A DNA stretch of 64,000 bases from Octopus sinensis. Lineage: Eukaryota. Within the stretch, counting starts at the first letter, position 1. Each line of letters begins with the position of its first letter. Shown in pieces: positions 689 through 51,659 of the stretch. The position numbers were made by a program, and so were the translations under genes. The notes under the pieces were generated by a model that did no database searches, was not told where the DNA came from, and saw only the letters and a program-made list of their open reading frames with translations. The stretch is from assembly GCF_006345805.1 (NCBI RefSeq), contig NC_043003.1:57040001-57104000 (forward strand). Reading direction: 5' to 3'.

Positions 689-786
689 GATGGCCGCTCA
701 CTATCAAGGAATACGAACCTTCGTTTCAGCACACTAAACTAATTAGAACGCTTTCGTCTCTTCCACCTTGGCAAAGAATGGCCACC
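689..786 (-). ncRNA. Pol III-like ~100-nt ncRNA family member (GGTGGCC variant), partly degenerate stem
   Basis: Minus strand: TATAAAT at -31, CTATTTTGC, GGTGGCCATTCT...TTGCCAAGGTGGAAGAG (A-box-like)...GAAGGTTCGTATTCC (B-box-like)...GGCCATC, then T-rich tail. Confidence 0.45.
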
Positions 787-1499
787 GATTCGGTTGTTGC
801 AAAATAGTAAATTTATAAGTATATGAACACACACACATCACACACACACACACACACACACCACACACACACACACACACACACACACACACACACACAC
901 ATACATACACACACACACACAACGCACATTTTACACATGTATACTTTCATATATGTATTTATAAATGCTTGCATACATACGCATACGCATATCTTTCTCT
1001 CTCTCGCTCTCTCTCTCTATCTACCTATCTACCTATCTGTCTGTCTGTCTATCTATCGATATATATATATATATATATATGGGTGTGTGTATTATGCATT
1101 TCTATATATGTGATTGGGTGTGTGAATGTGTCCTTTTATGTGAGGGTTTGTGTGCGTATGTGTTGTGTGTGTTTGTGTGTGCCTGTGTTTGCCTGTGCGT
1201 GTGAACTCCTGTGGTTGACTATAAGATATATTCAGAGCGCGATCGCTACATCATGGCTACAATCAGTAAAACAACCCATTCCAAGTTTTTCTGGTCCAAT
1301 CAGCTGTAGATTGGTACGCCTCAGCGGGAGAATGTGTGGCTGCTCGCATAGCCAGCGTGGTAGCATCATTCAAAAGCTAAAACTATGCGATGTGCATTGT
1401 GATCAGCAATGCATAACAATAATCTGATAGACCCATGGTTTATACTATAATATATGTATATATATATATATATGATTAAGTAAAATGAATCGCCAAATC

Positions 1500-3370
1500 A
1501 ATATGGCTGTTCAATGATACCTCTGTTTTAAAACCAAGGCAGATATTCTGCCAGCTGGTTATAGGTGCATTCTGCACCCTGTATATATTGCAAGCAGGGT
1601 AGCGAGCCGCTACCACCCTGCGGCAGACGACGGGATCGTGTAACTAACTAGGTTTCCAGCTAGATTTGCTCATATTCGTCAGAAATACCCGGTCGCTAGA
1701 GAAATGGCCAGAGTCCGCTCCAGCAAGTAATATGTAGAAAAGAAAGCGACCATAGGTCATATAGATGAATGACAAAATATCCTTGCAATTTATACTGGTG
1801 TTCCTGCTGTCATTCTGAAGCTCAGTCTATCATACTGTTGTGGTCCGCAATAAAGAATTAATTTACATTATTTACGCTTGTTTATATCACTGCATTAGGT
1901 TATTGGAACTAGCTATGCATGTCAGCTCCTTTGTGCCACAGGTCTATTTACACTATTTACATTATTTACACTCGACGGATATTTGTCTTCGTCTTGTTCT
2001 ACATATCGCCCACCAGACTTTACATTTCTTTCAAAAATTTGTTATGAGCTGTAATAATAGAAATTGGCTATGCAACTGTGATACGAAAATAAAAAGATAT
2101 GTAAATATTATCCAAAATAGGAAGGATATAGATTAATTTAAGCTCTGAGAAAATTATTGGTGTCACCTTAACATTATGGAGGAACACTACGTTAGTTGTA
2201 AAGCAAAGATCCAGAATAATTTTCCTTTTGTTGGGTTGGAGCACTATTTGCTCCATAAAGAGTATACTTGTAAGATCAAGCAGATGTTCCACGTTTCTGA
2301 GGCCGTGAAGTAACATACCTGAGAAAAAGTGGCGTATGTTTCGCAGAAAACTACAGACATAGAGGCATGTAGAAGCACCCAACTCCCCTTCAGCCTGAAC
2401 TTTCACAAAGTTGATTGGAAATGTATTCAGAAAGAGATCATGGAACAGAAATGTTTTACCACCGTTCTACTCGATATATTGACATGATGCTACTCCTCTT
2501 TATGAGAATCATGCACGACGTAGGCAGTAAGTTTTCTCCAGAGAGAATACCAAACCTCCTATAGATATGCCAAAGGTTCTGCTTCTGTATGGTACAAGAT
2601 AGGGCCACTGTTCGAAGAATATGTCTCGCCGAGTGCTGACCACCAGAGTAGCTATGAAATTCTGAATGTGCGATACAAAAGTGTTGTTTTTATCACTGCA
2701 TTGGATTATTGGAACTAGCTATGCCTGTGAGCTCCTTTGTGCCACAGGTCTACACCATCAAATTGCTCTTATTGATAGCATCAAAATAGTGGAAATAGGA
2801 GTAATATCGGCCATAGACGAAATTAGCTCAAAAGCAGCTACAGGCTCTGATGGATTTCTAGATGTCGTTCTAAAGAAATACAAAGGCGCTCTATCAACAC
2901 CACTTTAGATTTCCTTCAAGAGATTCCTCGTAACTGGGAGATTTCCTCAAAAATTTAAAGGAAGGCATATTTCCTATCTATAAAGGAGATAGCAGAGTAG
3001 ATGTTAAAAATTATAGAGCTTTCCCTCTAGCCTCCCATATGAAACGCATTATCAAGAAACAACTGATTACTACTTGACAACAAGCATGGCTTTGCTCAGA
3101 ATGAAGCTGCCTGGCGCAGCATTTGCAAGACTATGTTGAAACAAATAATGATTTGCTCAAATGCTGAAGTGATATATCTCAAACTTGCAAAGGCCTTTGA
3201 CAATGCTAAAAGCTGAAAAGACCCGGCATAAGCGGAACACTGCGAGGTTGGTTGCCTGTCTTCTTAAAAGACAGAAGCCAGGCTGTGGAAGCCAATTGAA
3301 CCCCCTTCAAGGAGACAAAAATAGACCAACACTGGCGCCCCTGAGGGTAATATTCACTGGGAACGCATAA
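1500..3370 (+). mobile_element. Decayed CR1/L2-like LINE (endonuclease-linker and RT fragments), interrupted by short insertions
   Basis: RT-like peptides IFPIYKGDSRVDVKNYR (~2968-3020) and NAEVIYLKLAKAFDN (~3160-3205), with frameshifts; upstream part matches fragments at 23570-24440 (+), 34300-35200 (-) and 52400-53500 (-). Confidence 0.7.
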
Positions 3371-4382
3371 GAATCCTTCTCATAGTTATTCATTTTGAAT
3401 TGTTATTATCTCATATCTGATTAACCTGTTATTTCGCAACATGCTTCCCGATTTTAGAATAGATTACTTATTAGTATTTCCTCCTATGTTCTATATACTC
3501 TAGGACCGCATAAAAACTTTTTAGGGGGCTATTTATTTGAATACTTATTATCGGGTAACTAATTTCATGTAACTAGCTGCACGATTTGGGTATCCATTAC
3601 TTATTGCGAATTCCTAATGAAAAGATCCTATATAAGGCAATTAGGTATTCTCTGTAATTGCACAAAAACCGTTTTAAGGGCCAGATACTTTGTATTGTTG
3701 TTATTGGATTAGCGAAACAATCATGTGGATGCAACCAATAGATAAGCCCGGCTTTCCCGGGAGTTACAGGCTACGTCATATATATATATATATATATAAT
3801 GTCTGAGTGTGCACCGTAGAACCTGCATTGCAAGAAGCTAGAGTCAAAGATTCTTATAGCTACATAAACTACATTGACTAATCACTGACACAGGAGAAAA
3901 CTTATTCCCTCGCAGCGAGCGACGTCCATATAATACCAAGCTACTTTCGCTTGGAATTATAGCCCTTCAATAGTGATCACTGCATCGCTGATGATTACGG
4001 TAATTCCTTCCTATCAGTAAATAGTATTTACCAGGTAAATCAATGTATGATTCAACAATAATTGCAACGTGGAAATTATGAAATAACGAAGGTGGCTAGA
4101 ATCGATATAAAATCAAAAGGATAAAAAATTAATTAGTTGTCGCTATGGTGTACGAGGTTAGCACGTACACTGCAAGGAGTAAGTGTCGAAAACTCTTACA
4201 GACATGACCTATTCAATCAATAAGCTACAAACACACACACATAACTGTATATGTGGATAGATATACATGCATGCATTTATACATACTTATGTGCACGTTT
4301 ACATGTGTAAAACACGGAAGATGTGTCTGCATAGGTATGGACGCATATATGTATAAATATACTATTTTGGTATAAAAGAACA

Positions 4383-4484
4383 GGTGGCCACTGCTTGCCA
4401 AGGTGGAAGAACTGGGCGTGTACTCATCAAAGAGTTTAGTACGCTGAAACGCAGGTTCGTATTCCTTAGTTGGTAGTGTCTCCC
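4383..4484 (+). ncRNA. Pol III-like ~102-nt ncRNA family member (GGTGGCC variant)
   Basis: GGTATGG at 4334 (-49), TATAAATA at 4352 (-31), GGTGGCCACTGC, TTGCCAAGGTGGAAGAAC, GCAGGTTCGTATTCC, partly paired 3' strand, TTTATTTTT. Confidence 0.5.
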
Positions 4485-49559: not shown

Positions 49560-49941
49560 AACGTAAAGTGTACTAGCCATCTAAATGTGGCTAGCCATGG
49601 GGGTGGCTGTTACTGAAGCTTTTAGCCCCAGGGGATCATCGTCTCCAGCTCCAGCTGGCTTTAGACACACTTTCTGTGCTCTTCTGATATTCGCAAAGGG
49701 AGGTCATCCTCTCTCGAAAACCGGTGATTACTGTACGTTGACGAGAGGCAAAAAACCTCGAAACTATAGTCCGTATGTATCACTTAGGTTTTCGAGAGGG
49801 GATGACTTCCCTTTGCGAATATCAGAAGGGCACAGAAAGTGTGTCTAAAGGCAGCTGGAGACGATGATCTCCTGGGCTAAAAGCTTCAGTAACATCCACT
49901 AAAAGCTTCAGTAACATTGAGATGGTAGTACACTTTACGTT
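49560..49941. repeat. Fold-back of the ~250-bp repeat monomer, 64-nt spacer
   Basis: 49560-49722 pairs with 49787-49941; the right arm carries a duplicated CTAAAAGCTTCAGTAACA. Confidence 0.85.
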
Positions 49942-50604
49942 GTCGAGCGGTTACTGTTTACATCTCGTTCGGAGATTTCTTAATGCTTATATGTAAACAC
50001 ACACACACACAACACACACACACACACACACACCAACACACACAACACCACACAACACACACACACAACACACACACACAACACACACACATCATATATA
50101 TATATTATATATATATATTTATATATATTTATATTTATATATATATTTATATATATTTATATTATATATATTTATATATATTTATTATATATATTTATAT
50201 ATATATATATTTATATATATATTAGATATATTATAGATATATATATATATATTATATAGTTTTGTTGTTATGTGTGTGTGTGTGCGCCGGTCCGAAATCG
50301 AACTCATAATTTAGCGATCATATAACTTACCCACCCATGAGCCCTCACACACGCACAAACACACATACAAAGACACACAAGCACATATACTCATACATAA
50401 TGCAATTACATGCATATATCTATATATATATTAAGTATGTGTTTACATAAGTATGTAGGCATGCATGCATTAATCCATACTGATATGTACTGATACAACA
50501 CGTGTAATACGATCAGTATGCATTTGTGTGTGTTTGTTTGTGGTGTGTGGGCAGAGGTATGGTCGCATATAATTATAAATACACTATTTTGCAAAAGACT
50601 AACA

Positions 50605-50706
50605 GGTGCCCATTGTTAGCGAAGGTGGGAGAGCCGAACTCTTTATTGTTAGAGTATGTAACTCTCTGCAATGCAGATTCGTATTCCTTATTTAATAATA
50701 GGCTCC
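50605..50706 (+). ncRNA. Pol III-like 102-nt ncRNA family member, last copy in window
   Basis: GGTATGG at -49; TATAAATA at -31; GGTGCCCATTGT / ATAATAGGCTCC (10 of 12); TAGCGAAGGTGGGAGAGC; GCAGATTCGTATTCC; long T-run. Confidence 0.55.
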
Positions 50707-51659
50707 AGAACTTTTTTTTTTTTTTGTAAAATGTTTCAAAATAGTGTTAAAGATAGTAATATTAAAAACGGCTATATAACTATGATGAAAAAAAAGCTGT
50801 TATTCGAAATAGAAAAGATAGATTAATTTTTATTATAAATCGTGTGTGTACGTATGTTTGTATGAACACATACAGTAATGCATACTTATAGATACGTATA
50901 CACGTGTAATATATGTAATTTGGTGTCTGTGTGAGTGTGTGTATGTGTGTGCATGAATGTTTGTGTGCATGTGTGTGTGCATGTATGTGTGTGCAAATGT
51001 GTGTCTGTGTGTGTAAGTTCGTGTGCATATATTTATAAACTGAGTACCTGACTACTTTAGTACTTCTTAGAACGCTACATCCAGCTGAATTTTTAGAAGA
51101 TCTTTTTGACCTATCCGCATGCTCTTAAATATCAAGGTTTGCCAGGCGTACCGATTGTCTGTAACCTGCTTATATTTGTTAATCCATGACATTAACTGGT
51201 TGTTATATCATTGCTGTGTTTTCCGTTCAGAAGATGTTTGAACATTTTAATAAACCGCTTTTGTTTTATATTTCTTTCAACTAAACTTGTGTCATGTAGT
51301 TTGTGGAAAGGTAAAATTAGAAACATTGTCTGACCACATGTCTCTATACGTTCGCTCAATGGAATTTGGCGAACATTGGTGTTCCGGACTTTGTGAACTC
51401 GTGGGCGTTCTGATAATGCATTCCCTGCCTCGCCTATATATGACTGCTCGCAATCCGGGCAGACAATTAGCTACACACACACATACACACACGACCATAT
51501 ATGTATATATGTGTTTGCATGATTACATACATTCATACAACATACATACATATATCCTTTTATTTTTGTATTCCTTTACATTTTTCAGCTGTAAAGCTGT
51601 GACCATGCTGGGCACCGGCAGTGCAATCACCACTTTCAGAGCCAATTTGATGTGATTGT

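Follow-up and report, generated by a model that had tools for sequence, protein, structure and literature searches.

The stretch analysed here, a 64,000-nucleotide window of the Octopus sinensis genome (assembly GCF_006345805.1, contig NC_043003.1, positions 57,040,001 to 57,104,000; GC content about 35%), contains a cluster of 29 related loci with the layout of small RNA polymerase III (Pol III) genes, located on both strands between positions 676 and 50,722 of the window (nhmmer, one-copy seed, iterated once). They comprise 25 full-length copies and four fragments (c10, c12, c18, and c26), with unit bodies spanning 685 to 50,710, and fall into the main subfamilies A, B, and C and a divergent trio, c03 to c05 (Table 1). 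The string GGTTCGWATTCC, with one mismatch at most, occurs 20 times in the 64 kb, 17 of them within the small-RNA family and 3 within unrelated copies of a short interspersed nuclear element (SINE), versus 0.25 expected from dinucleotide-preserving shuffles. A covariance model (CM) was built from 24 copies, without c04, and run on the window with filters off; it retrieved every one of the 25 full copies, c04 among them, and no family copy past 50,710. The family is genuine, its numbers exceeding chance by far, and a preliminary description of this DNA, which had counted about 25 copies and three fragments, was essentially right, the fragments numbering four by nhmmer. Weak matches of the same model at 13,239–13,347 and 42,894–42,976 corresponded to unrelated perfect palindromes and were rejected as family copies.

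All copies were anchored on the first G of GGT, and positions are counted from that G, upstream and downstream. In this frame, about 20 copies have a TATA box, mostly TATAAA, whose first base falls at precisely -31 or -30, and the nonamer CTATTTTGC, at -22 to -14, is the best-conserved upstream element; ACAGGT straddles the predicted start, GGTATGGA is more weakly conserved near -50, and (TG)n tracts are found further upstream of it. Inside the body, box A (consensus TRGYnnARBGG) is matched at 9–10 of 11 positions at +13 to +23, and GGTTCGTATTCC stands at +72 in nearly all copies, a B-box-like element reading GGTTCG(T/A)ATTCC that matches the consensus GGTTCRAnYCY at 11 of 11 positions when one inserted T is allowed. 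A second B-box-like or T-loop-like motif, TTCAAxT in a 4–5-bp hairpin, is located at +50 to +61. The +72 motif is followed by a 7-nt spacer and by a 3′ strand complementary to the first 12–14 nt, with a run of four or more Ts 4–10 nt past this strand in most copies. In 19 of the 25 full copies, the body counted from the first G measures 102 nt up to where the closing stem ends and exactly 106 nt up to a conserved GAA. Both the order of elements given in the preliminary description (TATA, upstream element, box A, B-box-like motif, closing stem, T-run) and its length of 101–103 nt were borne out on the anchored copies.

In animal type 2 genes that receive upstream help, the usual positions are +12/+22 for box A, about +54 onwards for box B, and -31/-24 for a TATA-like element (PMC7279448). 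Compared with these positions, the TATA at -30/-31 and the box A at +13 independently indicate the same start site for the octopus copies, and the whole architecture of a type 2 gene with an upstream TATA is found in them, that is, box A at +13 to +23, B-like motifs at +50 and +72, and TATAAA at -31/-30 in about 20 copies. The layout of the units supports the earlier view of a cluster of Pol III-type genes with A and B boxes, TATA, stem, and T-run.

Some further regularities were observed around and within the copies. Microsatellites of (TG)n and (TA)n type lie 60–100 nt upstream of almost every copy in all subfamilies (e.g., 860–930 and 21400–21420), and most of the listed sub-threshold Rfam matches to mir-297, mir-3149, and mir-466 arise from them. 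The central hairpin, at +47 to +64, resembles the T-arm of a transfer RNA (tRNA) and, in c16 and c20, consists of a 5-bp stem with the 7-nt loop TTCAATT (25751–25767, minus strand, in c16); it lies at tRNA-B-box distance from box A, so that the gene bears two B-box-like motifs (+50 and +72). In addition, TTTCAAAATAGTG is conserved about 25–35 nt past the T-run in copies of subfamilies A and B (e.g., 21576–21590) and absent from subfamily C; it repeats, as the inverted complement, the promoter element ACTATTTTG(C/A)A found at -22, and the same 9-mer thus brackets the gene in opposite orientations.

Table 1. Copies of the family and arms of the large inverted duplication. Positions are those of the window; stem, matching positions out of 14 in the terminal stem; MFE, minimum free energy; z, fold z-score.
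Feature	Position	Strand	Subfamily and state	Details
c01	685..786	-	C, apparently intact	102-nt body (4-nt deletion); TATA -31; B box; 12/14 stem; T4 at +4 after stem; CM 85.5 bits
c02	4383..4488	+	C, apparently largely intact	106 nt; TATA -31; B box +72; 11/14 stem; T4 at +8; CM 86.1 bits
c03	5428..5533	-	Divergent trio, probable pseudogene	No TATA; degenerate B box CGATCGTATTCC; no downstream T4
c04	5751..5876	-	Divergent trio, pseudogene	20-nt insertion; 126-nt body; internal T4 at +12; B box lost; CM 48.8 bits
c05	6180..6285	-	Divergent trio, weakened	B box GGTTCACATTCC; MFE fold without panhandle
c06	8929..9028	-	7-nt deletion in box A region	100-nt body; B box GGTCCGTATACC; 12/14 stem
c07	9152..9257	-	A-like, apparently intact	TATA-like -30; B box +72; 12/14 stem; T9 at +4; z = -3.97
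c08	11698..11804	+	C, body intact, upstream promoter replaced	nhmmer match from model position 33; 14/14 stem; degenerate B box
c09	16086..16191	+	C, apparently intact	TATA -31; GGTTCGAATTCC at +72; 13/14 stem; T10 at +4; MFE -48.1; z = -4.87
c10	17111..17217	-	B, 5′ fragment	First ~36 nt, then deletion; nhmmer model positions 20-78 only; alignment
c11	17512..17617	-	A, TATA lost, internal elements intact	Box A 10/11; B box +72; 12/14 stem; CM 104.6 bits
c12	20498..20606	+	B, 5′ fragment	nhmmer model positions 20-98; alignment
Inverted duplication, left arm	20718..26620			Contains c13-c17; self-BLAST, 89.8% identity over 6,152 columns to 38108-32035
c13	21446..21551	+	A, best preserved	TATA -31; box A 10/11 at +13; B box +72; 14/14 stem; T14 at +4; MFE -40.2; z = -7.0
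c14	21969..22073	+	B, weakened	9/14 stem; no T4 within 37 nt (no terminator); 1-nt deletion
c15	22822..22927	-	C, apparently intact	TATA -31; B box +72; 14/14 stem; T4 at +4; z = -6.45
c16	25709..25814	-	B, probable pseudogene or truncated product	Internal T4 at +37; B box GGTTGGTGGTCC; perfect T-arm-like hairpin CAGAG-TTCAATT-CTCTG
c17	26185..26290	-	A, TATA deleted	12-nt promoter deletion (module alignment); box A 10/11; 12/14 stem
c18	29644..29716	-	Internally deleted fragment	Near centre of the large inverted duplication; 73 nt; CM 24.7 bits; alignment
Inverted duplication, right arm	32035..38108			Contains c19-c23; self-BLAST
c19	32407..32512	+	A, TATA lost	Recent inverted duplicate of c17; 13/14 stem
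c20	32877..32982	+	B	Recent inverted duplicate of c16; internal T4 at +37; B box lost
c21	35937..36042	+	C, apparently intact	Recent inverted duplicate of c15; 14/14 stem
c22	36792..36897	-	B, degenerate	B box GTTTCGTATTGC; 9/14 stem; 18 substitutions vs c14
c23	37269..37374	-	A, apparently intact	Recent inverted duplicate of c13; highest CM score, 107.8 bits; 14/14 stem
c24	38436..38541	-	B, weakened	B box GGTTCGTATTGC; 9/14 stem
c25	40416..40521	-	A, apparently intact	TATA -31; GGTTCGAATTCT at +72; 14/14 stem; z = -4.74
c26	41906..42006	-	5′ fragment	About 60 nt of gene; nhmmer model positions 7-104; no B box or 3′ strand
c27	46726..46825	+	A	6-nt deletion; two stem mismatches; MFE -37.1
c28	47193..47298	+	B	B box +72; T4 at +5; weak terminal stem, 9/14; z = -1.81
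c29	50605..50710	+	A-like, last copy in window	TATA -31; box A 10/11; GATTCGTATTCC at +72; 12/14 stem; T14 at +5

Every element is kept in about 10–12 copies, namely c01, c02, c07, c09, c13, c15, c21, c23, c25, and c29, and perhaps c27. The others carry recognisable defects, including the loss of the TATA box (c11, c17, c19), of the promoter (c08), or of the B box (c03, c04, c16, c20, c22), and the presence of an internal T4 (c04, c16, c20).

The way in which the copies multiplied can be read from the DNA that surrounds them. An inverted duplication of about 6 kb, about 90% identical with gaps counted and with about 5% substitutions (5.1% in flanks), is centred near 29.3 kb, where c18 lies, and holds five gene pairs in mirror order. 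Older modules of about 1.5 kb, 72–79% identical to each other, contain a subfamily A gene followed about 470–520 bp further on by a subfamily B gene. Since the external promoter lies inside these duplicated segments of 1.5–6 kb, amplification took place by DNA duplication and not by retroposition. Between subfamilies, the bodies are 56–70% identical, against a shuffled baseline of 49%, whereas the flanks (61–260 nt upstream and 31–230 nt downstream) are mostly about 50–55% identical, with a few pairs at ~60%, and thus near the baseline, the gene unit being the only part that can still be aligned; body length and the places of the TATA and of the B box do not change from one subfamily to another.

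Single-sequence folds of most copies give one interrupted rod, or panhandle, made up of a terminal helix of 12–14 bp, a 5-bp helix (GCAGG/CCTGC and variants), a third helix in which GAAC(C) of the box A region (3′ half of box A) pairs with GGTTC, the 5′ half of the B box, and a variable centre. Of the cells of this panhandle, 77.3% are paired, compared with 34–46% when the 3′ partners are slid by 1–3 columns, a control that favours the panhandle in that the structure was specified from single-sequence folds of the same, related copies before the pairs were counted. Fifteen pairs changed on both sides (e.g., column 4:101, with AU 16, GC 3, and CG 2, and column 14:91, with UA 12 and AU 7), and the observed covariation score was reached by none of 500 shuffles. 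Pairing is also strand-specific, with 87 G.U cells versus 36 A.C cells (68 versus 29 without the recent duplicates), and the sense strand is more stably folded than the antisense in 23 of 24 copies, with fold z-scores of -4.0 to -7.0 in copies of subfamilies A and C. The closing stem that had been proposed from the letters alone is maintained by compensatory change. Between the recent duplicates c15 and c21, the differences in the terminal stem (columns 7:98 and 14:91) preserve pairing, while that in the central helix (column 39:69) does not.

Our results are probably best explained by a previously uncatalogued, lineage-specific family of type 2 Pol III genes with a TATA box, each encoding a rod-shaped RNA of ~106–115 nt, in a cluster that evolves by birth and death. 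The data show the anatomy, the covariation of the structure, and the way in which the copies were amplified; we infer transcription, the points where it starts and stops, and any protein partner. TFIIIC would bind box A (+13 to +23) and the B box GGTTCGTATTCC at +72, together with the second T-loop-like TTCAAxT at +50 to +61, and the TATA at -31/-25 would position TFIIIB, perhaps aided by the invariant CTATTTTGC at -22 to -14. Transcription would begin at the G of GGT and end in the T-run 4–10 nt past the closing stem, leaving a U-tail. The RNA is predicted to fold into an interrupted rod with the 12–14-bp terminal helix, the 5-bp helix, the GAAC/GGTTC helix, and a central domain capped by the T-arm-like hairpin. 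Tandem and inverted duplication of DNA segments of 0.5–6 kb would have spread the family, with about 10–12 copies staying intact and others decaying. As to function, an abundant, U-tailed, structured scaffold of a ribonucleoprotein, or a ligand of double-stranded RNA (dsRNA)-binding proteins, is the most likely role, a suggestion that we make with modest confidence. Vault RNA, rodent 4.5SI/4.5SH, and primate snaR are comparable cases, and the octopus family has no detectable membership in any of them.

The cluster could instead be a dead array, in which one tRNA-derived Pol III pseudogene or an old non-coding RNA gene was carried along by segmental duplication, all copies being silent and alike by common descent only. 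Several results speak for this or weigh against a living gene family. More than half of the copies are defective (TATA lost, B box degenerate, internal T4, or weak stem), and in the recent 6-kb duplicate the bodies have diverged at least as fast as their surroundings, with 7.2% substitutions versus 5.1% in the flanks; within subfamilies, too, bodies are no better conserved than flanks. Indel events showed no significant depletion in bodies compared with flanks, and substitution rates were similar in paired and unpaired columns, so that, with the substitution, indel, and paired/unpaired tests all non-significant, recent purifying selection is not demonstrable. RNAalifold returned an empty consensus structure on the 24-copy alignment, the slid control leans towards the panhandle as stated above, and the subfamily B copies and c29 fold poorly, with z only -1.8 to -2.8. 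Moreover, a box A-to-box B pattern searched in metagenome contigs of the Joint Genome Institute gave two chance bacterial matches and no relative, and a pseudo-peptide profile of the antisense open frames of subfamily A genes had no match among 5.8 billion proteins. A silent array is nevertheless hard to reconcile with compensatory double changes in 15 pairs and a strand-specific excess of G.U, with an exact length kept across subfamilies that are ~60% identical while most flanks are near baseline, and with TATA and boxes that hold fixed positions in all three subfamilies. We take these data to reflect long-term constraint on the unit and its shape, the recent duplicates being too young or too redundant to reveal it, and regard a wholly dead array as unlikely, if worth taking seriously.

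A different identity was suggested in the preliminary description, which held that the copies could be vault RNA (vtRNA) genes. According to this possibility, they would be the true vault RNA genes of the lineage, highly diverged orthologues of those of vertebrates, with RNAs that share vault particles with MVP and TEP1. The definition of a vtRNA as an RNA of 80–150 nt with box A, box B, a panhandle fold, and a T-run, encoded by clustered genes (PMC8824774), fits the copies on all points, as they have a body of 106 nt, box A at 9–10 of 11, box B at 11 of 11 with a 1-nt insertion, T-run, panhandle, and clustering; vtRNAs are, in addition, notoriously ill-conserved outside the boxes. However, the copies fail both tests made at the sequence level. 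With Rfam 15, no family reached its gathering score in the whole window, and at E ≤ 10 only microsatellite-driven “miRNA” (microRNA) noise was present among the 150 best of 186 matches; with the laxest filters at the same E, nothing was matched on the copies of a 1.6-kb stretch (three copies of three subfamilies) or on a single copy of 131 nt, including by the Vault model RF00006, so that membership is not supported. That model already includes vtRNAs of the mollusc Lottia gigantea and the annelid Helobdella (PMC8824774), and the premise that vault RNAs are annotated mainly in deuterostomes was thus not quite right. The box A with its 3′-flanking TTACTTCG, from the Lottia gigantea and Helobdella entries, served in that study as the most conserved vtRNA probe (the GGTTACTTCG signature; PMC8824774). 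A mollusc lineage would be expected to retain this extension, but GGTTACTTCG is missing after box A from all copies, which carry AGGTGATAGAAC where it would stand, and it has a single 1-mismatch match in the 64 kb, outside the copies, versus 1.96 expected. Vault RNAs and the present family share a ~100-nt Pol III transcript (predicted in the octopus), box A and box B with upstream elements, panhandle, variable centre, T-run, and frequent clustering (PMC8824774, PMC7279448), and differ in the Rfam match, in GGTTACTTCG, and in a copy number that is roughly ten-fold higher, with at least 25 copies, far above the usual 1–5 vtRNA genes. As the generic description applies but neither sequence-level test was passed by the copies, we give vault membership a low probability. 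A literature search found no paper linking vault RNA to octopus or cephalopods and none describing this family, and a string search no paper containing the B-box or SINE strings.

A more specific proposal, to which we attach a slight chance, can be built by analogy with adenoviral VA RNA, the ligand of PKR and ADAR. The copies would then be non-vault, tRNA-promoter-derived rod RNAs under selection for shape, with ~10 active paralogues that differ mainly in the central domain and act as a diversified set of ligands or decoys of dsRNA-binding proteins; in a coleoid host, this might tie them to RNA editing, which is exceptionally active there.

Mobile elements were also considered, either as the head of a SINE or as a foldback or miniature inverted-repeat transposable element (MITE) with the stem strands as terminal inverted repeats. 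Such an origin would account for many copies on both strands, for termini that look like inverted repeats, for a tRNA-like promoter as in SINEs, and for the inverted copy of ACTATTTTG about 25 nt past the terminator in subfamilies A and B, but it is very unlikely on several grounds. In all subfamilies, homology between copies reaches about 60 nt upstream of the transcript and includes TATA and CTATTTTGC, which retroposition could not copy, and the copies lie within DNA duplications of 1.5–6 kb; the flanks, ACAGGT and C-N-GAA-T(n), are conserved, so that target-site duplications would have no place, and the T-run comes directly after the stem, with no A-rich tail or tail derived from a long interspersed nuclear element (LINE). 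Pairing is of the RNA type, with the G.U excess on one strand. Within the window, then, the copies do not behave as the dispersed SINE or MITE heads with target-site duplications that the preliminary description had named as the finding that would overturn it. A MITE bounded by ACTATTTTG/CAAAATAGT, or by the stem strands as terminal inverted repeats, was rejected for similar reasons, as homology runs beyond these motifs and the G.U excess affects one strand.

Genuine SINE copies of the same window look quite different from the family. They are tRNA-derived, located at ~53480–53640 (minus strand), ~37900–38080 (plus), and ~20750–20930 (minus), and have the B box GAGTTCGAATTCCGCC followed by GAGGTCGACTTTGCCTTTCATCC; they appear to resemble the abundant octopus SINE, which would fit the earlier suggestion of a cephalopod. 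Like the family, they have A and B boxes, and their B box GAGTTCGAATTCC shows the same unusual TTCGAATTCC variant; unlike it, they have a long non-tRNA body, lack a closing stem, a conserved upstream TATA, and an immediate T-run, and are missed by the hidden Markov model of the family.

Membership of a known small-RNA family, whether tRNA or selenocysteine tRNA (tRNA-Sec), Y RNA or stem-bulge RNA (sbRNA), 7SL, 5S, or small nuclear RNA (snRNA), is barely credible: the A and B boxes and the T-arm-like central hairpin recall tRNAs, an upstream TATA is also used by tRNA-Sec and Y RNA genes, and Y RNAs share a terminal 5′/3′ stem, but ARAGORN found no tRNA or transfer-messenger RNA gene in the window, Rfam 15 gave no match on the copies at gathering score or at E ≤ 10, and the MFE folds are rods and not cloverleaves, the T-arm-like hairpin being the only arm that remains. 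As judged from these sequence models, detectable membership of Vault, tRNA, tRNA-Sec, Y RNA, 7SL, 5S, and the snRNAs is excluded. The suggestion of a tRNA-derived class is weakly supported, since the boxes and the hairpin agree with it and ARAGORN and the Rfam models gave no match. The central hairpin could be read as an anticodon loop with UCA/UUA “anticodons”, as in tRNA-Sec, but this was discarded because there is no cloverleaf and no Rfam match and a T-loop fits better. For Y RNA/sbRNA, the Rfam Y_RNA model, which describes a terminal stem with the Ro60-binding helix, had no match on the copies, the Ro60-binding sequence not having been looked for by eye.

Other features of the window were recorded in passing. 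At 13180–13400 there is a near-perfect palindrome with arms of about 105 bp and a short GGTGGTG centre, foldback-like or MITE-like and unrelated to the RNA family, with a weak CM match on both strands. A second long inverted repeat, at 42860–43010, has arms of about 70 bp with a few mismatches and gave sub-threshold Rfam matches to plant and animal miRNA models. On the minus strand, 19221–19712 encodes a fragment of a LINE-type reverse transcriptase (Pfam RVT_1, E = 4e-8), whose closest relatives, only 70% identical, were found on the large ENA contigs ERZ25066843 and ERZ25066847; these loci held no member of the small-RNA family, only an unrelated palindrome. Finally, an ATG-initiated open reading frame of 133 aa at 44423–44824 (plus strand) contains FYVGVT...L..R...H, which by eye resembles the motif of GIY-YIG-type nucleases, and had no significant Pfam match.

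Returning to the favoured explanation, a lineage-specific family of Pol III genes, comparable systems are found in distant hosts. The snaR RNAs of primates, ~117 nt long, are Pol III transcripts with a rod shape and internal boxes; they evolve rapidly and have tens of copies in clusters of tandem and inverted repeats. They are Alu-derived and primate-specific, and their partner is NF90. The rod shape, the boxes, and the repeat clusters are shared with the octopus family, and the Alu origin sets snaR apart. In VA RNA and EBER, the 5′ and 3′ ends form a terminal stem next to a central domain, and both act by binding dsRNA-binding proteins. Their genes, with A and B boxes (type 2) and upstream TATA-like elements (PMC7279448), differ from the present ones in being viral, about 160–170 nt long, in single or double copy, and without sequence similarity. 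Rodent 4.5SI and 4.5SH are lineage-restricted RNAs of 94–98 nt with type 2 promoters and, at -31/-24, a TATA-like box that matters for function; they originate from tRNA/SINE or 7SL-related sequences and, in the case of 4.5SH, are encoded in tandem repeats of 4–5 kb with hundreds of copies (PMC7279448). The family described here resembles them in the type 2 plus TATA-like promoter, in its presumed lineage restriction, and in genes embedded in repeats (4.5SH); it has no sequence relationship with them, belongs to another host lineage, and has a canonical TATAAA and a long panhandle.

In conclusion, to our knowledge, lineage-specific Pol III RNAs (vault, Y, 4.5S, snaR, BC1) are few and almost unannotated outside vertebrates. 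Should the copies be silent relics, the cluster would be no more than an ordinary array of duplications in decay. If they are transcribed, they would constitute a new and unusually expanded Pol III family, with about 10–12 apparently intact paralogues. Its promoter architecture is testable, its fold is supported by covariation, and the covariance model is ready for annotating related genomes. Transcription would also open to direct testing the questions of what the real vault RNA of the lineage is, of whether a canonical TATA cooperates with A and B boxes in this phylum, and of how a Pol III family may be born by segmental duplication.

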